A stretch of 64,000 bases of DNA from NCBI GenBank assembly GCA_001179505.1, contig CDMY01000646.1, positions 245,117 to 309,116 on the forward strand, written 5' to 3'. Shown one piece after another: positions 39,235 to 59,620 of the stretch. Under the pieces are notes generated by a model, which was not told the DNA's origin, ran no database searches, and saw nothing but the letters and a program-made list of their open reading frames with translations. Made by a program: the position numbers and the translations under genes. Source of the DNA: Vitrella brassicaformis CCMP3155 (lineage: Eukaryota; Protista; Chromerida). Numbering within the stretch: the first letter of the stretch is position 1; every line of letters starts with the position of its first letter.

Positions 39235-42153
39235 CTACCTCTTCATCTGGCCTCTCTTGGCACACCACTCCTGCAAGTCCCTCTGCAGCCCCTCCAGCTC
39301 ACACCGCAGCCGAGCCTTCCTCCCACTCCCACCGCCATGCTCACCCCCAAACCAGCCCTCTATCGCACCGCGCAGCCGACACATCACACTCACAGAGGCA
39401 CCACACAACACGCCCACCGCATCAGGCCCCCTCCCCCTGCCGCCCGCCCCCTGCTGTGCATTCGGTTGTCGGGCCACAGAGATGGGGCAGAAGTTGATGA
39501 GAGAGTGGAAGAGGTCCTGCCAGATCTCGTCGCCGCCTCGAGGGAACCTCGCATTCGGTGCGAGGCCCCATTGCGGCATCGACATTGCTGCTGTGAGGGA
39601 CGGCCCGGCGTCTCTTGTGGGCTTGGGGTGGATGGGGAGGGGCTGGATGTGGGGGTACTTGCCGAAGAGGAGTATATGTGCGATGGCGGCGACACCGGCT
39701 AGGTCCGCATGGTGCATCCAGGGGAGGCCGCTGAGCATGGCCGGTGGCAAAAGGTCGTCCGCATGACAGTCACCTACACACACAAACACATAAAAGTCCG
39801 TTCCCCCTCTCTGTGTGTCGTGTCGTGTCGTGTGTGGGTGTACCTTTGAAGATGCAGTCTGGGTAGACGGCGTGTGTGTCGAGTGCTCTGCCGAGGTCGA
39901 TGCCGAACACGCCGATGGGCGAGGGGGCGTCCAGGAGCGGATGGTGGCGTGTAGGCTTGATGTCGTGATGCGGTCCTGGTATGGCGAGGTGTCTACTGCG
40001 GTCGGCGGCCATGTCGGCCACAATCAGGTTGTCCGTCTGCAGGGGTGATTGGAGAGCCGCACGTGTGTTGTGTTTGTGTCTTGTGTCTGGTTGTTGCATC
40101 TGTGGTGTTTGTTACCTTGAGATCGCCAGACAGCAGGCCAACCTGCAAAGGGTAAGATGGGCACACACATTGGTGTCGTCTCTCTCTCTCTGTGTCTCTC
40201 TCTCTGTCTGCACCTGACCTGGTGCAGCTGCATGAGCAGCCCCATGACCTCGTAGACTAGGAAGAACGACACCACCTCACTGCAGTAACGACCCCTGTAC
40301 CAACCCAGAACACACACAATACGACACACATCCACTAATCCCATCAATTGTGTCTCCCAGCCTACCTCATGAGAAAGAACTCGTTGATGGCCGTGTGCAT
40401 GTCGCATGCCACAGGCATCGTCGGCAGCACCATCACACTCACACCACCCTGACCATCCCTCCACCCACCACCATCCCCAGCCAGCCGTCTCGCCACACGG
40501 TCCTCGGGGCCGCTCAAGTCGATGCCGTGCAGTGACAGCGACACGCCCGTCAGCCAATGGGATGGCTGGGGGGACTGTGGGGGGCGTGTGTCGGAGATGA
40601 GAGGGGCTCGTCGGTGCAGGGCGGAAGAGGCGTATAGCTCACGCAAAGCGCTGCCGAAGTAAAATGTCTACACCAACACGACACACACGAGGGAGAAGGA
40701 GAACACATCTCTCTCTCTCTCTCTCTCTCGAGACACTGTTGCTGTCTCACCTACCTGGATTTTGACAGCACATTCCACCGCTTCCGTGCCCCCCTGCTCC
40801 CGCCACCTGCCGGCGTGGACCCTCGCAAAGCTCCCACGGCCCAGCACCCGACCCACACGCAACGAACCATCCCTCCCTCCGACCTTCACGGGCAGAGTGG
40901 CGCCTTCCCTGCAGTGGTTGGCCCGGATGGCGAGGGGGTCTGTGTGCAGCTGGAACAGGCGTGTGGGGGATGTGTCTGGGGGTCCACGGCTGTGGAGCGG
41001 TCCGGGTGATGCTGAGCCTTTGTTGATGAGCTGCTGCAGGATAAGATGCTCGCGGTAGGTGCGACTGGCGTGGCAGTACGGATCCACCAGCCTGTGTGTG
41101 TGTGTGTGCGGAGAAAGGAGAGACAACAACACACGATGGATGGATCGCCGCCCACCCTCCATGCAGTCCATTCCTCTCTCTCTCTCTCTCTCTCCCTCCC
41201 TCTCTCCCTCTCTCCCTGACCTGACAGTGAAAATGCGATTGCTGGTGAAAGGTCCCCTATTGTCCGGCAGTGCGATGCTCACAGCAGCCCGCCAGCGGTC
41301 CACCCGGTGTGGCCAATGGCGGCAGACCTCTCCGGGATGACTCACACGCACCGAAGTCCTCCCCCTGGTTGGCAGGCTTGTCATGCACCAGGGGCAGCGG
41401 AGGCAGTGAATCGCGAGGCGGTCGCTGCCCTTCGGGGGCGTGTGGCTGTGAGGGGCTGGCGTGTCGCTGCGATGGGCGGGGTGATCGTGGTCCCACCTCA
41501 GGGTCACGACACACCTTGGCACCATCAGCAATACCTCCTATGGCGACGGCGGTCGCTGCCGTAGCTCTCTCAGGCTGCAACCGTCCTTGGTCATGATGCT
41601 GTGCCGCCCCACCACCGGGCGGCTGTTTGCGCTTCTGCCGTCGTCTCAAGGCGTCCATCTCCGCCTGCAGCCCCTCCACTGGCCGTGCATGGTGCCGCAC
41701 ACCCATCGCATAGACCTGCCCAGCCTCGTCGAATCGCTCTTCTTTCTCCAGAGAGAGAGCCCACGCATGAAAGAACAGCGCGGGAAGCGACGAGTGGGCG
41801 GACTGCTGCTGGTGCTGTTCGTAGAGCTTCTCGAAGGCGGCGGCTGGGTGGGCAGAATTGCACGCTGCAGAGATGGCCGCCTTCTCCTCTCGCGAAGCGA
41901 AGGACGCCAGCAGGCCGTCGGACCCTGGTGCAGCTGCTGGTCTTTGTTGGCCTCCGTCATGCTGGTGGTGGGCAGGGTAGCTGCATCTGTCATCCTGATG
42001 GTTGGCTAACGGCTTCCGGGCCGCATTGTTGGCCACCGCCGGGGCATTGAGAGGCGGTGGGTAGGGTGGTTGGTTGTTGTTGCGGTTGAAGCGGCTCGGG
42101 AACAGGGCCTTGAGCAGCTCCTGCGAGGGGAGATTCTTGCTGCCGCTCTCCAT
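39235..42153 (-). CDS. BUB1: Bub1/MadBub-like spindle checkpoint kinase
   Basis: N-terminal Mad3/Bub1 TPR-like block (FEKLYE...ALFFHAWALSLEKEERFDEAGQVYAMGVRHHARPVEGL). Kinase LGRGSFARV, CAVK, LLSGDLK|TDN, GIDLGRALD...IFEG|DCHAD...PWMHHADLAGVAAIAHILLFGKY matches Bub1-specific kinase features. Confidence 0.85.
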
Positions 42154-42398
42154 CCTCACCGTTGTGCGGTGGCGTCAGGAGTTTACAATAGGTGGCACAG
42201 ACAGGAGTTTACCACCGCTCCTAGGGCTGGTTTCGCGCAGTGATTCGCAAAGTGGCGGGATGGATGTTCACTCAGACATGAACAAAGAGCGTATGCGTGA
42301 GCGCGCAAAGTCACACGACAGTCAACAGCAGCTACGGTGCACGATAGACAGACAGCTCATGTGACGAAAAGGACAGCAGCATGCGATCCCTAGCTACA

Positions 42399-45544: not shown

Positions 45545-47626
45545 ATGGTCGACACAGCCGGTGACGTCAGCCTCTCGCCCTTCGGCAACGAGTCGTGCCT
45601 GAGCACGGCTTACGGTGCGCCGGGTTCGCCTGAGGGTCTGCAGGTGCTGACGCACTACCAAGATCGGCTGGTGTTCCTGCACCCCTATGTGCAGCAGTAC
45701 GCCTGGGGCAAGAGGGGCAGCGAGAGCCTCGTCGCCAACCTGGCTGCGGCCACGGGGCACCCAGTGGACAGGAGCAAGCCGTACGCGGAGCTGTGGATGG
45801 GCTACCACCCGTCGGGGCTGTGTTCGGTGGTGGGGCCCAACACGCCCATCGACCGGTTTCTGGAGCACAACAGGGAGTTCCTCGGCGACATCGGGCGGGG
45901 CGGCCGGGTGCACCTGCCCTTCCTCATGAAGGTCCTCTCGGTGGCCATGCCGCTGTCCATCCAGGCGCACCCCGACAAGGGCCTGGCGGAGCGGCTGCAC
46001 CGGGAGCACCCACACATGTACAAGGACGGCAACCACAAGCCAGAGATGGCCATCGCACTCACACCCTTCGAGGCCCTCGGCGGCTTCAGGCCCGCCGCAC
46101 AGATACTCACACACGTCCAACAGGTACGCACACACACGCGCAGTGGGCAAGCCACGTCCATCCACCACCTCTCTCTGTCTCTCTCTCTCTGTGGTTGACA
46201 GGTGCCAGAGTTGCGGGCGGTGTTGGGTGAGGCGTGTGCGGCGTCAGTAGAGCACCGGCTGACCCATGGGGGCCCCGAGCAGGGCGGTTCGGCGTTGCGG
46301 GAGTTCTTCGAGGGTTTGATGCGGTGCGACGTGTCGGTCATGGCGGCTCAGCTGGACCGGCTGGTAGATAGGCTGCGGCGGCTGCGGGACAGCGGCAGCA
46401 TGGAGAGCGAACCACTCAAACAGGTGTACAGGTACGTCTTTATTATGCATTGATTGAGGGGGGCGTCAGAGGGAGAGATGTGTGTTCTGTGCTCCTTGTG
46501 TGTGTGCGTGTGTGTGTGGATCAGTTTGGCGTTGGTGTTGAGTGAGCATTTCCCGGGAGATGTGGGCGTGTTCGCGGCGTTCTTCCTCAACCACATCAAG
46601 CTCAATCCAGGTGAGAGAGGGATGCGTCACTCACTGTGTGTGTGGTGTATGCGGCATGATTGACGTGTGCTGTGCTGTGCTGCACAGGTGAGGCGATGTT
46701 CATCGGGCCGAACACGCTTCACGCTTACCTCAAGGGCGAGTGCATCGAGTGCATGGCCAACTCAGACAATGTCGTCAGGTAGGTGTGTGGACTGTCAACA
46801 CTGTCAACACCAACACGCGCCAGGGTGTTACCCACTCGTGTGTGTGTGTGTCACAGAGGCGGTTTGACGCCAAAGCACAAGGATGTGGATCTCCTGTGCA
46901 GGGTACCCTCCCCCTCTCCCCCTCTCCCCCAACACAACACAGCACGCCACACACTCTCTCTCCTTTTACCTCTCCCTGCCCGTCTTCTGTGTGTGTGTGC
47001 AGATGTTGTGGTACGACAAGTGTGGCGTGGAGGTCATCACGCCCTCCTACGTCGACGAGCCGTCAGGCCTCATGCTCTACCGCCCGCCGGTGAGCGACTT
47101 CGAGGTCTACCGACTCGTCCTCCCCAAGGGCCGCGAGATCCACAGGATATTCAGCGCCACCGGACCTACCATAGGCATCGTCCTGCAGGGCAACGCACGG
47201 GTCAGTCAGACAACACACAAGCACATAAGTCGCGAGACGTCCCCTCTCGTGTGTGTCACGTGGTTATGCAATCAGGCGGCCACGACGCCCGCGCCGTCCC
47301 GGCATCCCTCCCGCCGGTCCTCCCCCCCAGCCACCCCACCAAAGCACTCCTCCCTCCCAGGCGCCACCCACACACCCACCCCCTCCCCCTCGGTGCAGCT
47401 GCAGCCGGCCGTCAGCCCCAATGGCAGCAATGCCCTCCCCGGCCAATGCATCAATGCGGGCGGCGTGCTCATGGTGCGGGCGGGCACCGCACTGCGGCTC
47501 ATCAACACCGGCGATGGGTGTGGAGGAGGGGGCGGGGGCGACCTGGTGGTGTTCTTCGTGTGCTGCCAGGAGGGGTTCACCGACGAGGGCAGCCTGCCCG
47601 TCGCGGCCGAGATGGCGGGGGCGTAG
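45545..47626 (+). CDS. MPI: Mannose-6-phosphate isomerase, type I
   Basis: [83 protein letters not shown]; Zn-ligand Gln/His/Glu/His present. Confidence 0.97.
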
Positions 47627-49682: not shown

Positions 49683-50511
49683 TCATGCGTACTTAAACGA
49701 GTGCCCCCCCAGGCTGCGAAGCGCCTCGTAGCCAACCGGCAGAATCTCCTCCAGAACGATCCACATGATCAGGGCCGCGTTGGGCGGCACGAGCGCGGGG
49801 AAGCCCCTGGTGCCGAAGGCCATGTGCGGTGGAATGTAGCAGAGACTCTTCTCGCCCTCGCACATGAGCCTCACGCACTCCTCCAGACCGCTGAAGACCG
49901 CGTGGCACCCGACGCGGAACTTGAGCGGCCGGCCCCTGTTATAGGTGCAGTCAAACCTGCAACACAGGCAGACAGAGAGAGACACGAGCCGCGCTGCTTC
50001 TGTGGATGGATGGGCCTGTGTGTCAGACATACATTTTGCCGTGTGTGTGGTCGGTTGAGTAGAAGGCGATGTAGTGCAGCACGACGGTGGACCCCTTGCG
50101 CGGCTTCTTGACGAAGTCCCCGTTGATGACCGTCTTGACCTCCACCCCACTCAACCCACGCACCCTCTCGCGAGAGAACACCTCCACACCTGCCCACAGC
50201 ACACACACAACGACACGCATCAATATGCCTGGGTTCGCCAGAGAGACACCAACACACCCACCGAGGGACTGCAGGTTGAGGTTCTCCAGTGTGTAGCGGC
50301 CCGGTGATTTCGGGAACAGTCCATCGAGGCTCGGCTCTTTCGTCCGATACTCAGGTGTCCTGGGCCTCACGACCCTCGACGGCCGATGCTGGTGCTGATG
50401 ATCAGCAGTAGCAGCAGTAGCAGCAGTAGCAGCGGCGACAACCGCCGAGTCGCCCTTGGCGAGAGACGGCCGGCCATGCTGAGGGACGGGCGCCTCAGTA
50501 GAGGCCGCCAT
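49683..50511 (-). CDS. FKBP-type peptidyl-prolyl isomerase domain protein (divergent active site)
   Basis: KKPRKGSTVVLHY, RFDCTYNRGRPLKFRVG, VFSGLEECVRLMCEGEK, YIPPHMAFGTRGFPALVPPNAALI; three exons. Confidence 0.88.
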
Positions 50512-52027
50512 TGCAGATGAGAGAAGCAAGAAAAGATGAAGAGAGGCTTGTTAAAGGGATGCGGGATCTAAGAGAGGCCGTGGATTCGTCAGAAGACGCC
50601 CCTTCTCCAGATCGCCGCCGCCACGCAAACACTCGCCTCGGCTGCTCTCTTTCTCCTCGCGAACGCTTTCAGTGGCCAAAAGCTGACAAAGACTGGCAAT
50701 GAATCCTAGCGGAAGTCCAGCTTGTTGTCATGCTATCACCATGGGCCCTCGGGTGATTCACCAATACGAGAAAGCTGTCGATGCCGTCGCCCTTGGGGCT
50801 CGGCGCATGCGGGTGAATCGAACGAGACGCGGTCAGCTGAGGGCACACACACGGACAAACATAGGCTTTTGCACACTGTGGAGGTGCTGGAACTGAGAAA
50901 GCCTTGAAAACCGTTACGGCCTCTTGGTCCTACAAGCGCGCAGCTTCGTTTTTCCTTGTTTCTCGTCAACGAGTGTTTTAAGGCTCACAGTCAGCTTCAA
51001 TGAGCGCTTCTGGACTGCTCTCTTCCCTGCAAGAAGGACTGGTAGCCTTGCAAAGTGGACATGTAGCCCCGAGCCCCACCAGGCGAGTGCTCCTCCTGTC
51101 TGCCAATTAGCGTCCTGCGGCTGTACGTCCGCCCTCCCTGCCAGTGTAGAAGGTCATCCGCGGCCACTTTGCTGCTTCTTGAGCCCGTTTTTGGCCCTAA
51201 TTTGGCGAAATTCGCCCCCTGGAGTCTCTTCATCGCCCGTGGGGCCCTGCTCCCATTCCTTGATCCCAATCTTCAAATCCCCAAGTGAAGGTGAGGCACC
51301 ACACGGGAAAGGCAGGCCCTCACGTGTAAAGGCAAGGCCCACCGATCGACCTGAAAATTTGCAATGGTAGAGCTGCGGCTCGTAGTGCTTTGAGTTGGCT
51401 GGGGGCTTGACTTCTTTCAGCATAGGCAATGACATGAGACCCCTCTGCCTTAGAGGGAGGCCACGCTGGCCCCCATGTGCTAACAACCGTCAGTTTGAAA
51501 CCAATCAGTCATTTTGAGTCGTTTTCGACAGGGAATGTCTCCAGCCTGCCCCCCCGCCCTCCAGCCGCTCCCCGGCCTTTGACTGAGTCTTCTTCGGCCG
51601 TTTCTTTTTGATCGATTGATCCTTTTCCGAGCCTGCAGCCTGCCAGCTACACCTTCTTGCGGCCCCCAGCCTGAAAAGTGCGCCAATTGTGAAGCCATCC
51701 GATCGACTCTCTCGTATCACCCGGATGGCCTCTGATGGTCATCGGGGGGTGCCAGAGGGTCCTCGGTGGCCTCATAGCAGCGTACTTTCCCACAAACTGT
51801 GCATAAGAGCGAGGAAAACGCCGATAAAGGCAGCCAGACGGGCGAAATTTCGCACAGACCTAAAACTCGCGAGCCAGGCCTTTGCCCTGTTTTTTGTGCG
51901 TGCGAGCCTCTCCAGACCCGTAATTGTGCTCATCGAATCTGCCGCTTTCTCGTGTGGGTCAGGTGGTGTGCGGCGGCGGACGGCTTGCCCTCGTCGGTAG
52001 GGAGACTCGGCTTATCCCTACATCAAG

Positions 52028-55000
52028 ATGTCGCTCCCTCCCTACCTGAATGAGGACCAGCTGTCGAAGTTCAGGACCAAATACTGTAAGCGAGGGCACA
52101 GGGGGACGCCACACACACGCACAGAGGGCGGGGAGGGGGAGAGAGTCAGGTATGGGTCGGTTTTGGTCGTCTATGTGTGGGTGTGACGCGGATATCGCCG
52201 TGTCGAGGCAGAGAAGGCAGCCGCAGCCAGGCGTGCGTGTCACCATGTGATAGAGGAGAGCATTGCGCATCGCCTGATACCACTCACACCCCGTTCCATG
52301 CCTGGATGCTTTCGTGTGGCCTCATGTTTGCTCGCGTCTCACTGTGTGTGTGCACCCGTGTGTGTGGCATCAGAGCATCTGTCCTGACGCCTGGTTTCTC
52401 CGTTGTGTGTGGTGTGCTGCAGGTGAGCGTCTGATCAAACATGGGAGGTGCTGCTTCGGCCATCAGTAAGAGCCACCTGCACACAGGCAGGGAGAGGGGA
52501 GAGTGGCGGGTGGAGGGGGAAGGAGTCCGTGAGACACGCATGTTGGTGCGTGCATGCGGCCTGTCTGTGCGCCATGGCTATGCTGAGCTGCCCTGCTGGC
52601 CTCACACCTGCTGCTCGACGCGCACATGTGCACACAGTCCCTGCCACACCACACACACCTGCATGTCCGTGTGCGTGTGTGTGTGTGTCTCTGTCTGTGT
52701 GTGTGCAGGTGTCAGTACTCCCATCTGGATTGGACGCGTCGTTCGCCCGAGAAGTTCGACTACGAGCCGCGTCTGTGTCCGCACGTGACCCTGACGCCCA
52801 CCATCAAGAACGGCAGGAGGGCCACCGTCGCGACATCCACTTGCCCATACGACAAGAAATGCCCACTCGCACACACGGTCAGTAGGGCAGCTGGTTGGTC
52901 AGCGCGACGCACACACATGGATGGATGGATGGATGAATGGATTTGCTTGCATGCTGCTGCTGGCGTCACGTCGTGGATGGGGTTCCTGTGCCCATGCGCT
53001 TCAGAGAGAGGAGCAGATGTGAGCAGCACACCCACATGTGACTTGACTGATGGCTGATATTTCTGTGTGCTTGGTGTTGGGTGTGTTGGGTGTCAGGTAC
53101 CACCCACGGGTAAGGAACGGTCAATGGGACGGACTGTACTGTTGCCGACGGGCAAGTATGTGTGTGTGTGTGTGTGTGTGTGTCGTCCACTCATCCGTCC
53201 ACACCACACCCATATCAGATATACAAGACCATCGAGTGTGTGCGGCACAAGCACACCCCCTGCGAGCGGTACTACTGCCCTTTCGCACACTCCAAGTGAG
53301 CACTTGGTACTGACTGGGTGGGGGGAAAAGTTAGATGGGGTTCGTGTGTGTCATGTGTGTCATCTGTGTGTGTGTGTGGTGCAGGGACGAGTTGCATGAT
53401 TTGACTAGAAATCCGGGAGAGACACTGCAGGACATTCTCGGTCGGTCACACCCGCACCCACACACACACATATTCGTTCATCTTTGTCGTCTGCGTGTCT
53501 GGCCATGCGCTGCGTGTGTTGGCAGGTCCGTTTGATAGCTTGGAGGATCTTTACCCCGATGAGTACTCCACAGAAGACCAGGTCACCCCGCAGGTGCGCA
53601 CGCAGACACACACACACACACACACGACACGGGTACTGGTGTTGGTGTCGGTCTGTCTATCTGTCTGTCTGTCTGTCCCTCCCTCCCTCCCTCCCTCTGT
53701 GTGTGTGTGTGTGTGTGTGTCAGTTGAAGCAGCGCTGGATAGCTCAGGAGAAGGAGTTCTGGAACGAGAAGGGCCACGACTTCGACATCCCCCCTGACGT
53801 CGGACAAGACGACCTCGGCACTCTCAACATCGGCGCAACACGACGCACGTACGCCCACAACCAACCACCCTTGCCCACCCCCTCCCTCTCTGCGCGCATG
53901 TGTGCGCGTACGCAGGCACCATGGCCGTGGCAGGGACGGCCGTGTCTATGAGGATGACGACAGCAGCAGATACGGCCGCAGACACAGAGGCGGTGGTGCA
54001 GCTGGGGGCGGCCGTGGGGGCGGTGCTGGTGGTCCTGGCGGAGGAGGGAGGAACACATGGCGTGGAGGAGGTGCCATGGGTGGGGGTGGAGGAGGTGGGA
54101 GGGGTCTTGGCGGCGGCGGCGGCGGCGGCTTCCCCGACTACCCATATGACGACTTCGCACTCGAAGGTCAGTCATGTCGACCCTCACGGACACCTCTGCA
54201 CGTCTCCCTCCCTCTCTCTCGATGTGTCAATCTGTGTGTCTCTCTAGTAGACCGTCGTCCCTCCCACCGGCGCACCCACAACGGCCCTGGCAGCGCCGTG
54301 CCCCGCACTCGCCACCCCTACCCACCCACAGCAGCAGCAACAGCGGACAACCGTGGGGGCGGCAGCACCAGCACCGGCGGCGGCCCCAATCGCAACAATG
54401 GCTGGCCCTACGGCGATGGAGGCCTAGCTGATGAGGCCGAGGGCATGGACGGGGCCATAGGTGGAGTGGGCGGCGGTATGCGTGTGGGTGGAGGTTTGCT
54501 GAGTCCGTATCAGGGCAAGAGCGGCCCCGCTTCTGGCGGAGGGGAGTACCTGTATGCGCGCGACGAGCGGGAGAGGCCGCGAAGGGAAGCCAGCAGCAGG
54601 GGCCAGGGTAAGACGGAGAGAGAAGAGAGAGAGATACAGGGGAGAGAAGCGCTTTCTTTTGACGCGCGTGTGCGTGTGTGTTGTGTGTTGTGTGCAGGCC
54701 GTGGTCGCCGTGACGGCCACCCTGTGTTGCGTGAGGTGGTGTGGCGAGAGGTGCAGGGCGTGTTCCTCTACGACCCACAGGCGCTCATCGGCACTGCACG
54801 AGATGACCCTCAGACCAAGGCACACTGCACACACACACTTACACACAGCCCTCCTCGTGTCTGAGGGTGTGTGTGTGTGGTCAGGTGTATGGCGGCGTGA
54901 TGCGCCGCGGCGCCATGGACAAGTACAAAGTAGCCGTCAAGGTGATATTACACACACACACACACACACACACTTTCCTCTCTCTCTCTCTCTCTCTGGA

Positions 55001-55878
55001 TGGATGGATGGATGCATGTCAGGCGGTCCCGTTGGCCCTGCCGTCTCCGTCGGAGGACCTGCTGCGCGAGTTCCAGGTGCTGCTGCAGCAGCGGCACCCC
55101 AAGTTCGTCAACCTCCACGCCATATGCATCACGGCCACCTGCCCCCCAGCCACACAGACCAACCTCTTTTGCCCAGCCATGCTCCCGTCCATCGAGGGCG
55201 GCCCACAGGTGCGGTGGGCATGGACGCCGTCGCCATCCATGTGTGTGTCTGTCTGTGTAAGTTGTGTGTTGTGGGGTCTGTTGGTGTGTGTGTGTGTGTG
55301 TGCAGAAGGAGGGCAAGTACCTGTGGGCGGCGCTGGATCTGTGTGTGGGCCGTTTGGACGAGATGGTGCCGCTGGAGCGGCTCAAGAACACGGCCCTCGA
55401 CGGCCCCACACCGCCATTCGCATGTACGATGGATGTGTGTGAGCGAGAAGCAGAGACAGACAGAGACAGACCACACACGCGTCGATATGGTTTCCCTGGC
55501 GTCTTCACTTTGTCGTGTCCACTCACTGTGCAGTCATTTCGTTGCTGCACGACTTCCTGGACGCCATACACAGCCTCCACAGCGTCGGAATCGCCCACAT
55601 GTACCCTCTTCTCCTTCACCCTCCCCCACCCTCCCCCACCCTCGCAACACACACACACACACACGCACACCCCATGTGTGTGTCTTTGTCTGTGGATGGA
55701 TGGATGGATTGCTGCAGGCGCATCCACCCAGGCAACGTGTTGGTGCAGTCCAACTACAACCTGAAGCTCGGCGACTTTCTGGGCAAGGTGCGCTACGTCA
55801 TGGTGGACGCGCTCGTCGACAACGGCAAGGGCGGCATCGCCAAAGCGCGGGACATTCTCACAAAGGTATGGCTTCACA

Positions 55879-55915
<37 letters not shown>

Positions 55916-56410
55916 GGATGTGTGTGTGTGTGCGTGCGCCTGTAGATGGTGGACAACAAGTCCGAGTGCATGTGGTACGCCCCCGAGCTGCTGCAGCACC
56001 TGGTCGACCAGCGCAGCCGCACACACAGCCTGCTCGAGATGCAGACGACCGACCACGAGCAGGCCGCAATCGCCACGGCCATCCCCACTGACACAGCCAG
56101 CCCCAACACGGCCGCAGACACACTGCAGGCAGCACAGGCGGTGAGTTGGGCGAAGGAGTTAGGGAGGGAGGGAGGGAGGGGGGCACATACACAATGGGGG
56201 GATGGATGGATGGATGGATATTTCTCGGTTCCTCTCTCTGTGTGTGGTCTGGTGTGTTGCCGCAGCTGGCACTGGTAGAGTTCAAGCGGCAGTCTCAGAT
56301 GATCGACCTGCTCAAAGCCGACGTCTGGTCGGCAGGTACTCACACCTACACACACTGGCAGACAGACAGACAGACAGACGGCAGCAACACCTGCACACAC
56401 TCTCTCCACC

Positions 56411-56458
<48 letters not shown>

Positions 56459-57367
56459 GTGCAGCTTTGGTCATGTTTTATATGGCGTCTGGTGGGCAGC
56501 ATCCGTGTGGCGACATCGACAAGCCTTCACCGACCGTCCGGCGCGTCCGGGAGGACGACGAGCCATACAAACTCAGAGACGTCAGCGAATACGGGGAACC
56601 AGCGTGCGAGACGACCCACACATCCATCCATCCGGGCTGATTTGGATTGTGTGTGTGCAGCTGTCCAAGTCGGCGGTGCTGCACGATCTGCTGTGTCTGA
56701 TGCTGCACAAGGACCCCGCCAAGCGCATCAGTGTGCAGCAGGCCCTCGACCACCCCCTATTCTGGCGAACCGACGAGACATCCAACTTCCTCTCCATCTG
56801 CAGAGACGCACTCGACGTAGCCAGGCCATCCCCCAACTCACCCTCACCCTCCCCCCCACACACCCATTGCCCATCGCCCATCACCCATCCCTCTCTCTCT
56901 CTGTCTCTGTGTGTGTGTCAGTACTGGGGCTATTCGTTGGAGTCTTCCCTCCCTCCCCCGCCGTCTCCCCTGCTCTCCCTCGGGCAGGCGCTGTTCGACA
57001 TCCTCCACCCCGACAAGATCGCCTGTCGGTGGAAGGACATCCTGCGGCAGGCCCACGCACGGCGAGCGCGCCAGACGCTGGGGCTGGGGATGGGTTTGAA
57101 GGTGGCGGAGCAGGTCGGGGGCCACACGCTCGAGGAGATTGAGGAGAGATACCGGTTCAAGCAGCCTGCACTGTCCACGGTGAGATCAACGGCAGTGGGG
57201 TCGAGAGTGGGGTTTGGGGCGTGTTGGCATCAATGTGGTGTGGTGTGGTGTGTGTCAGACGTTCCGCAAGAGTTTGGAGTACGAGACCGGAGCGTCGATG
57301 CTGCTCTTCCTCTCCGAGTATCTCAAAGACGGTAGGTAGGCCACCCAACCAACTGCCGCACACAAAC

Positions 57368-57398
<31 letters not shown>

Positions 57399-59019
57399 AA
57401 CAGACAAGCCAACCCCGCCCTGTCCACTGTGTCTGTCCCTCTCTCTCTCTCTCTCTCCTCAGAGACTGTTCCCCTGCCCGACCGTCGCCGCGACGTCTGC
57501 GACCTGTTCATCCACTTCAGCAACATCACGTGCGCCTCATGGGAGTGCCTCTGGCAGTTCGGCTTCTCGGCAGGCCTCAAGGCGCCCCCGCCCCCGCCCC
57601 ATGCTGCAGCTGCACAGCCACAGCAGCAGCCACCCCAGCAGCAGCAGCAGCAGCAGCCACCGCCTCTCCTTCCCTCCATCCAGCAGCTCCCGGCCCTCTC
57701 CCTGCCGTCACGCAGTGGGCATGGCCACCACTCCCAGCACCAACACCATCAGGCGCCATCCTACGGGGCCGGCACGACCACCACGGAGTCGCCGTCGTCT
57801 CTCCCAGGGGAGGAGTTCTCGGCCACAGCAACGACAACGGCCGGCCGCCACGTGGGGTACGATCCCGCCATGGCGCTGGCAGAGCGGGCCAACATGAGCC
57901 TGGGTGGGCCGTCGAGGGAGGTGTCGTCCTCCCCCGAGACTCTGAATGAGGGCGGTGGTGGTCTGGGGGCCGGTGTGGGGGTGGGTGTGGGTGTGGCGGG
58001 GGGCCTGTTTGAGCCCAACGGGAGCATTGGTAGCATCGGCAGCTTGGTGCAGTTCCTCACCCCGGACCAGCAGCAGCAGCACCAGCCATTCGCCACCACC
58101 ACGGCCACACCCTTTGCCATGGCCCCCCACACAGCCACGGCCCCCCACCTACACCGTCACACCCGCACCCACACCCACGACCTGCTCACGCCAGCCGTGC
58201 CCGCCGGTCCCAGCTCTGGCATCTTCGGCTCCATCGCGCCCATGCGCACATTCACAAGCGAGTCGAGTGGGCCCGACATCGGCGCGGAGAACGGCATGGG
58301 CATGGGCGTCGGCGGAGTCGCTGGCTCCTTCGCACCGGGTGTGTGGGGCACTGGGGCGGGGGGGCAGCAGCAGAGCCTCTTTGCCTTCCCCTTGTCGAGT
58401 GGCGGTGCTGGAGGCAGTGGTGAGCAGCCAGCTGCCCCATTCCACCACTCACAGCAGCAGCAGGCGGGCAGTGGGCCCTATCAGCCGCCCCCGATGGTGG
58501 TGGGCAGTAGCAGCAGCAGTAGTGGCGGCGGTGGCGGTGGCGGTGTGTTCGGCGGTGTTGGTGTTGGGATTGGTGGTGAGGTGCCTTCGTCGTCTTCTTT
58601 GCGCGGGATGATTGACGGCGACATGATGATGGGCATCCAGCAACTGCAGCAGCAGCTGGGTTGTGGGGGTGGGGGTGGGGTCGGCGTAGGCACATCCAGC
58701 AGTGTTCAGGTACACCCACCACGCCACACACCCACCACACCCACGATGCACACACGCATACGTGTGTGTGTCCTTCTGTGGTCTGTCTCAGAGTTCCATC
58801 TCTGCCGCTCACAGCGAGGCGTTCCAGCCCCACCACCAGCAGCAGCAGCAGCAGCAGCCCGGACCTCCACCACCCCACGTCAGCACACCCAACATCATTA
58901 CTGAGCCTCAGGGCCCCCCTGCAGCTGCGGCGGTGGCCATGGCTGTCGGCCCGTCGCTGCCGGCCCCGATCGCCCGCAGGCCGCCCAAGCTGGGCGGCAG
59001 CTTCCAGAGTCAGAACTGA
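52028..59019 (+). CDS. Unkempt-type tandem CCCH zinc fingers + RGG/Gly-rich region + IRE1/RNase L-like pseudokinase + KEN-like domain + Gln/Gly/Pro-rich tail
   Basis: MSLPPYLNEDQLSKFRTKY|CERLIKHGRCCFGHQ|CQYSHLDWTRRSPEKFDYEPRLCP...CPYDKKCPLAHT|REEQM|YHPR|IYKTIEC...CERYYCPFAHS. Kinase VAVK, LLREF, AHMRIHPGNVLV, LKLGDFLG, WYAPELL, ADVWSA, YMASGGQHPCGD, KDPAKRISVQQALDHPLFW. Over 20 exons join in consistent phase; TGA at 59017-59019. Confidence 0.85.
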
Positions 59020-59620
59020 TAGACGGGAAGGGGGAGATGGAGGGAGGGAGGGAGGGAGGGAGGGAGGGGTGCATAAGATGCTTACGTGTAGCTGACTGAT
59101 GGATGCGGGGTGTGCGTGAGGTGAGCGGATGCATGTGTAGGGTCGTTGGCTCGTAGGAGCGCTCCTTCCCTCCCTCCCTCCCTCCCTCCCTCCTTGGCTG
59201 GCTGGCTGGCTGGCTGGCTGGGGGTGCGTAAGCAAGTGGGTGGGGAGATGGGATGGGTGTAGGAGAGAGAGGGTTGTGATGTGATGCCTGCCTGCCTGCA
59301 TACCCTCCATTGATGAGTGAGTGTTTAACGGCCTGCTGACACACTGGGATTTGTGTCTCTTCCTGCCTGCCTGCCTGCCTGCCTGGCTGGCTGGCTGCCC
59401 AAAGCGTTTTTGCCTAAGTGGTGGAGAAATGGGGTTTTCGCGCCCCCACAGAGACAGACAGGAAGGTCCCTCCCTCTCATTATATCGGAGAGAGACCGAC
59501 CCACAGGTAGTATGGTAGTTGACTGACTCATCCATCGCCTCATCAATCAGATCAGGAGAGAGAGGGGGATCCCTTCCTCCCCCCTCTCTCTCCCTCTCTG
59601 TCTCCCCCACCCCCCACCCC

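Follow-up and report, generated by a model that had tools for sequence, protein, structure and literature searches.

The window analysed here is a 64,000-nucleotide (nt) stretch of the genome of Vitrella brassicaformis CCMP3155 (contig CDMY01000646.1, positions 245,117 to 309,116), and all the positions given below refer to it. On its forward strand lies a gene of 25 exons that encodes a protein of 1416 amino acids (aa), in which three CCCH zinc fingers and an RGG tract are followed by a kinase domain that has lost its catalytic aspartate, by a helical extension that begins like the KEN domain of IRE1, and by a long low-complexity tail (Table 1). The model was built by hand, joining open pieces at GT-AG sites from a reading of the three plus-strand frames and the DNA of 51900-59200, and was checked against spliced RNA contigs. 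Its start and end coincide with those given by a sequence-only reading of the locus, which had proposed a cytosolic enzyme resembling RNase L and IRE1.

Gene structure and transcript evidence

Six RNA runs were found to hold the stretch, and four of them were mapped onto 52001-58000. In run X6, record 21 (2941 nt) chains exons 3-10 and record 22 (3236 nt) chains exons 11-24. The former contains exon 3, both micro-exons and exon 10, its joints 53295/53385 and 53440/53526 being listed as GT..AG; the latter presents exons 11, 14, 18, 21, 22 and 24 at positions that match the exon lengths exactly with exon 15 ending at 55423, and the contig runs on past 58000. Run X1, which comes from a different study, provides independent support for the micro-exons and for the joins of exons 15-18, and agrees with X6 at 55423/55534 and 55600/55718. 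The junction between exons 8 and 9 was placed at 53593/53748, where the transcript length is best met. Between 52877 and 53218, the letters in the X6 and X1 contigs are exactly those of exons 4 and 5; these micro-exons have canonical AG/GT flanks and code for 'REEQMYHPR', which links fingers 2 and 3 and completes the third CCCH finger. The gene is expressed and its exon chain is real. The single spliced open reading frame (ORF) of the sequence-only reading is thus chained by contigs over exons 3-10 and 11-24, whereas exons 1-2 were found in no listed contig of the mapped runs and the joint of exons 10 and 11 is unbridged.

All the introns are of the GT-AG type except intron 12 (54820-54884, donor GCACAC), which is probably GC-AG. 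The transcript length from exon 11 to exon 14 fits 122+57 nt, and the sole alternative of equal length, a GT-AG pair at 54858/54924, would delete the beta-2 strand of the kinase. Intron 10 has 81 nt and carries no in-frame stop, so that the finger half and the kinase half lie in one continuous ORF whether or not it is spliced. The introns in 52086-58791 are short (65-243 nt) and rich in (CA)n, (CT)n, (GGAT)n and (CAGA)n microsatellites, which generate numerous spurious joints in the mapped contigs around 56357-56381.

No finger-like or coding-looking ORF was seen on the plus strand of 50550-52028, and therefore the ATG of the model is a reasonable start. Record 21 reaches ~2.2 kb beyond exon 3 (~49900-52713), far over the 101 nt of exons 1-2. 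This long 5' reach raised the possibility of further coding exons upstream, which we rejected since 50550-52028 holds no suitable plus-strand ORF. The extra length represents either a long 5' untranslated region (UTR) that overlaps the divergent FKBP gene or an assembly merge of both transcripts, and it is probably 5' UTR merged with the FKBP transcript.

RNA-binding head

A pattern scan of the spliced product located three CCCH fingers at aa 20-39, 57-89 and 106-123, with the spacings C-x8-C-x5-C-x3-H, C-x21-C-x5-C-x3-H and C-x7-C-x4-C-x3-H, respectively; these are tandem C3H1 spacings, with matches starting at aa 20, 57 and 106. Each finger is split by introns and becomes visible only after splicing, which makes chance an unlikely explanation. 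Single-exon matches are weak: a Nab2-like zf-CCCH in Pfam (E 0.016) and a tandem C3H1 protein in PDB (E 0.01) with exons 3 and 6. An acidic linker separates the fingers from the RGG tract, for which no Pfam family was matched and whose aa 200-285 comprise 43% Gly and 13% Arg, with 5 RG and 3 RGG. In agreement with the sequence-only reading, all the motifs that it quoted for the fingers and the RGG tract are found in one product once the exons are joined. Its label of 'Unkempt' fared worse, as it reflects motif resemblance only. We take the finger lead-ins 'FRT..C' and 'YH..YKT..C' to be Unkempt-like; the PDB searches with single finger exons retrieved the generic tandem C3H1 protein mentioned above and not Unkempt.

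A diverged kinase with an IRE1-type end

The kinase landmarks follow each other in canonical order: VAVK460, E479, HMRIHPGN586, DFL606, YAPE 647, DVWS, GGQHPCG (HPxG) and DPAKRIS..HPLFW 794, the last being the kinase motif quoted by the sequence-only reading, which is present in the spliced product. VAVK, the alpha-C Glu (within LLREFQVL, which starts at aa 476), the catalytic-loop Asn, the DFG Asp and APE are retained. The HRD motif reads HMR at aa 586, with the catalytic Asp replaced by Arg and the Lys two residues on replaced by His; DFG reads DFL at aa 606, having lost its Gly; the Gly-loop has degenerated, and long inserts occur in the domain. The kinase is very diverged and has lost its catalytic aspartate. 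With pieces of the domain, Pfam recognised only Pkinase in exon 21 (E 4.6e-4) and PK_Tyr_Ser-Thr in exons 13-14, the alpha-C region (E 0.014), and the best solved matches of the N-lobe in PDB were generic tyrosine kinases with E 0.14 or weaker.

The end of the kinase is more telling. The alignment of exon 21 with yeast IRE1 (query 7-50) runs 15 aa beyond the point where the alignments with CDK, MAPK and CLK stop. When a profile made of exon 21 and its two best database fragments (3 sequences) was searched against PDB, 16 IRE1 chain sets came on top (E 2e-12 to 3e-9) and were aligned through profile position 54, while the next family, CLK1 (E 1.3e-8), was aligned only to the kinase end. In the comparison of Atlas features, the clusters that ranked first for exons 21-22 were three of PF06479 (score 0.96, 194 features in common). 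The kinase ends in HP[FL]FW and leads straight into the first KEN helix. These comparisons indicate that the kinase end and the first helix that follows are IRE1-like, and this is the only part that is demonstrably so.

Post-kinase block and nuclease motif

Further along the post-kinase block, 'YETGASMLLFL' aligns by eye with the human IRE1 stretch 'YKGGSVRDLLRAM', which includes 'YKGGSVRDLL'. The span from FW to 'Y..G.S.LL' is 111 residues here and about 60 in human IRE1, pointing to some 50 inserted aa. 'VCDLFIHF' presumably corresponds to the F..YF..RFP stretch of IRE1. Within the block, part of exon 22 resembles helices 2-3 of a SANT/Myb domain below significance (Pfam Myb_DNA-binding, E 0.13; yeast Ada2 SANT in PDB, E 0.38, with QTLGLG in common). 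Among the motifs that the sequence-only reading had assigned to a KEN domain, the initial FW..NFL...D is significantly IRE1-like, whereas RWKDI, Y..G.S.LL and F..F.NI...W fall within pieces for which the Pfam, PDB and Atlas tests showed no KEN signal.

The active site of HEPN/KEN domains is Rx4-6H, and both its Arg and its His are needed for KEN activity (PMC3710099). A pattern search found no R-x4-6-H anywhere in aa 795-970, so the catalytic verdict is independent of the alignment. Where IRE1 has 'DLLRAMRNK', the protein reads 'MLLFLSEYLKD', and the FLSEYLKD that comes after 'MLL' contains neither Arg nor His. Since the motif is absent here and the kinase catalytic residues are lost, both enzyme halves look dead. 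HEPN domains without the motif are predicted to be probably non-catalytic RNA binders (PMC3710099).

Solubility, tail and genomic surroundings

The highest mean hydropathy over 19 residues is 1.41 and falls in Gly/Ala/Val repeats, with no transmembrane segment evident, which bears out the earlier statement that the protein has no membrane anchor. IRE1 proper has a signal peptide, a luminal sensor and one membrane span; the N-terminus is here a zinc-finger array. No Pfam family was matched in the low-complexity tail of ~450 aa.

Upstream of the gene lie genes for an FKBP-type prolyl isomerase, for a phosphomannose isomerase of type I and for a protein with Mad3/BUB1 homology that includes a kinase part. 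On the 3' side, a scaffold gap makes the 3' UTR and the next gene incomplete here.

Table 1. Features of the locus, in window coordinates
Feature	Position	Strand	Basis
Coding region (ATG at 52028, TGA at 59017-59019)	52028..59019	+	model
Exon 1	52028-52085	+	model
Exon 2	52423-52465	+	model
Exon 3	52709-52877	+	model
Exon 4 (micro-exon, 14 nt)	53005-53018	+	model
Exon 5 (micro-exon, 13 nt)	53097-53109	+	model
Exon 6	53219-53295	+	model
Exon 7	53385-53440	+	model
Exon 8	53526-53593	+	model, RNA-guided placement
Exon 9	53748-53848	+	model, RNA-guided placement
Exon 10	53916-54166	+	model
Exon 11	54248-54607	+	model
Exon 12	54698-54819	+	model
Exon 13	54885-54941	+	model
Exon 14	55023-55208	+	model
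Exon 15	55306-55423	+	model, end 55423 set by RNA
Exon 16	55534-55600	+	model
Exon 17	55718-55865	+	model
Exon 18	55946-56140	+	model
Exon 19	56266-56335	+	model
Exon 20	56465-56580	+	model
Exon 21	56661-56816	+	model
Exon 22	56922-57179	+	model
Exon 23	57259-57331	+	model
Exon 24	57463-58709	+	model
Exon 25	58792-59019	+	model
Three-CCCH-finger array, aa 14-123, exons 1-6	52067..53290	+	pattern scan of spliced product
RGG / Gly-Arg-rich disordered tract, aa 200-410, exons 10-12	53847..54717	+	composition
Diverged protein-kinase domain, aa ~418-798, exons 12-21	54739..56765	+	motif positions, Pfam
IRE1-type junction, HPLFW and first post-kinase helix, aa 794-815	56751..56816	+	IRE1 alignments
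Post-kinase helical block, aa 795-965, exons 21-24	56754..57581	+	motif scan, piecewise tests, AlphaFold models
Weak SANT/Myb-like stretch in exon 22, aa 850-893	57024..57155	+	Pfam, PDB, neither significant
G/P/S/Q/A-rich low-complexity tail, aa 966-1416, including intron 24 (58710-58791)	57582..59016	+	composition
FKBP-type prolyl isomerase gene, upstream	49686-50550	-	Pfam FKBP_C, E 1e-14
Type I phosphomannose isomerase gene, further upstream	46199-47626	+	Pfam
Mad3/BUB1-homology gene with kinase part	40668-42159	-	Pfam
300-N scaffold gap, 600 nt 3' of stop codon	59621-59920	none	sequence

Discussion

The interpretation that we favour, and to which we give somewhat better than an even chance, is that the locus encodes one soluble protein of ~1416 aa, composed of a CCCH/RGG head, a dead kinase of the IRE1/RNase L lineage and an extension that starts like KEN and lacks the nuclease motif, which would act as a non-enzymatic regulator of RNA. 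In this sense, the fingers and the RGG tract may select mRNAs. The kinase-extension module might serve as a dimerising or possibly nucleotide-binding scaffold, as the pseudokinase of RNase L does (PMC4718504); the nucleotide-binding Lys, Glu, Asn and Asp are all still present in it. The low-complexity tail could recruit effectors or drive granule formation, by analogy with Unkempt, a CCCH protein that binds RNA sequence-specifically and acts via a disordered effector interface (PMC4358403, PMC11009413); the disordered region of Unkempt recruits CCR4-NOT and PABPC (PMC11009413).

Several observations weigh against this interpretation. The catalytic-loop exons alone were not recognised as a kinase by Pfam or PDB. 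Beyond the first post-kinase helix, Pfam, PDB and Atlas gave no KEN signal with exon pieces as queries, short pieces being a weak test for a diverged domain, and the AlphaFold models of such pieces are all-helical and of low confidence, with a predicted local distance difference test (pLDDT) of 41 for exons 21-22 together with their intron, translated in frame, and 60 for exon 22 alone. Additionally, no listed contig bridges 54077-54248 at the junction of exons 10 and 11, no orthologue was found that would show conservation, and the proposed function is one that we infer throughout.

The extension is where a competing explanation has most room. Possibly, though with clearly lower probability, only the kinase end is IRE1-like and the rest of the helical block is specific to the lineage, perhaps a SANT/Myb-like three-helix unit, and no homologue of KEN; the gene would then encode an RNA-binding CCCH-RGG part joined to a dead kinase of IRE1 origin and an unrelated tail. 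Exon 22 alone speaks for this alternative, as it yields no PF06479 in Pfam, only the weak match to the Ada2 SANT domain, and unrelated bacterial clusters in Atlas (0.88); so do exon 23 and the start of exon 24, which gave nothing in Pfam, PDB or Atlas, and the long distance between FW and 'Y..G.S.LL'. Against it, the order and the spacing of the motifs past the insert follow IRE1, 'YETGASMLL' matches 'YKGGSVRDLL', and short exon pieces test a diverged domain only weakly. On balance, we lean slightly towards the block being a true but eroded KEN remnant.

A more ambitious form of the regulator hypothesis, which we regard as speculative and improbable, is that the dead kinase-extension is a nucleotide-gated dimerisation switch derived from an IRE1/RNase L ancestor, which would couple sequence-specific RNA capture by the CCCH fingers to the assembly of RNA granules or to translational silencing. 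A small chromerid family of such genes would in that case be left over, from before parasitism, of a cytosolic pathway of the IRE1 type which disappeared later in apicomplexans; canonical IRE1 is reported to be missing from apicomplexan parasites (PMC13076163). A bolder version still would have the extension cut RNA with non-canonical residues.

The sequence-only reading had gone in another direction, with a cytosolic RNase L/IRE1-like enzyme in which RNA recognition by the fingers replaces the IRE1 or RNase L sensor and activates a KEN endonuclease that would serve mRNA decay or antiviral defence. The domain order resembles that of RNase L (sensor, pseudokinase, KEN) and the Tyr of the 'Y..G.S' motif is retained. 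Nevertheless, the motif Arg and His that are essential for KEN activity (PMC3710099) have no R-x4-6-H counterpart in aa 795-970, where 'RN...H' is replaced by 'SEYLKD', and most of the block is not demonstrably KEN, which makes such an enzyme very unlikely. What stands of that reading is a soluble CCCH-RGG-pseudokinase protein with an IRE1-type junction between kinase and extension; the active RNase L-like mechanism does not.

It is just as hard to believe that two genes, one for a small protein with CCCH and RGG and the other for a distinct kinase protein, were joined only in the model. Record 21 stops in a GGN repeat and record 22 begins with the first bases of exon 11, leaving the unbridged interval between them; yet the two halves are on the same strand, 81 nt apart, with no in-frame stop with or without intron 10, the coverage in X6 is continuous, and a simple repeat is a usual breakpoint for assemblers. 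Finally, we rejected a PAN3-like adaptor of the PAN2-PAN3 deadenylase as scarcely credible: Pan3 also combines an N-terminal CCCH finger with a pseudokinase (PMC4158885) and a helical C-terminal part (its coiled coil and knob) and acts non-catalytically, but here there are three fingers instead of one, a motif scan found no PAM2-like motif, the Pfam scans of the pieces returned no Pan3 family, and the kinase end is of the IRE1 type.

Set beside known systems, the protein resembles IRE1 in the C-terminal end of the kinase (DP.KR..HP[LF]FW) and in the next helix, for which IRE1 chains are the best solved matches; it differs from it in having no signal peptide, luminal domain or membrane span, in the HMR and DFL motifs, in the lack of Rx4-6H, in the insert and in its generic N-lobe. 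With RNase L it shares solubility and the succession of an N-terminal ligand-binding head, an inactive kinase that keeps the nucleotide-binding residues, and an extension. The head, however, consists of CCCH fingers and RGG here and of 2-5A-binding ankyrin repeats there, and the nuclease motif is absent here. In agreement, the Pfam scans of the pieces showed no ankyrin family, the N-terminal 410 aa being made up of CCCH fingers, acidic linker and RGG, and RNase L was absent among the 60 matches listed in the PDB profile search. Like Unkempt, the protein groups three CCCH fingers in a cluster, with long disordered regions after it; Unkempt has two such clusters and a C-terminal RING, whereas here there is one cluster, no RING and an added kinase module.

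The sequence-only reading had supposed that this architecture was undescribed, and this is contradicted by Table 1 of the HEPN survey of Anantharaman et al. (2013), in which CCCH-kinase-KEN fusions are catalogued (PMC3710099). The architecture thus holds as a variant of a catalogued one: according to that survey the KEN motifs are 95% conserved (PMC3710099), whereas here the motif is lost. We found no paper that characterises a protein of such CCCH-kinase-KEN architecture.

Searches for relatives returned little. An exhaustive phmmer search of 1.84 billion representatives, with exon 21, the intron and exon 22 as query, returned four weak matches, with neither an orthologue nor the gene's own product; word-indexed protein searches with P0004 (one of the phmmer matches), exons 21-22 and the last-exon ORF yielded nothing useful, and a metagenome scan with exon 22 found no relative. 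The gene product, annotated or ORF-called, was not found in either of the two large protein collections searched, and the gene may be missing or mis-modelled in public annotation. P0004 itself, which comes from a 10.8-kb Logan contig, is a 666-aa protein with two degenerate modules in tandem that are kinase-like and both terminate in [FY]FW (FFW or YFW); it has a short helical tail and no Pfam KEN, and is possibly another eroded IRE1-type module.

An active mechanism of the RNase L type is not supported, and on present evidence the locus does not represent a new RNA-cleaving defence or decay system. The gene would rather illustrate how the kinase-extension module of IRE1 and RNase L can be reused, after the apparent loss of both activities, behind an RNA-binding head in an alga related to the apicomplexan parasites. 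In this sense, it bears on the theme of pseudoenzymes as scaffolds and on how the unfolded-protein-response machinery of alveolates evolved.

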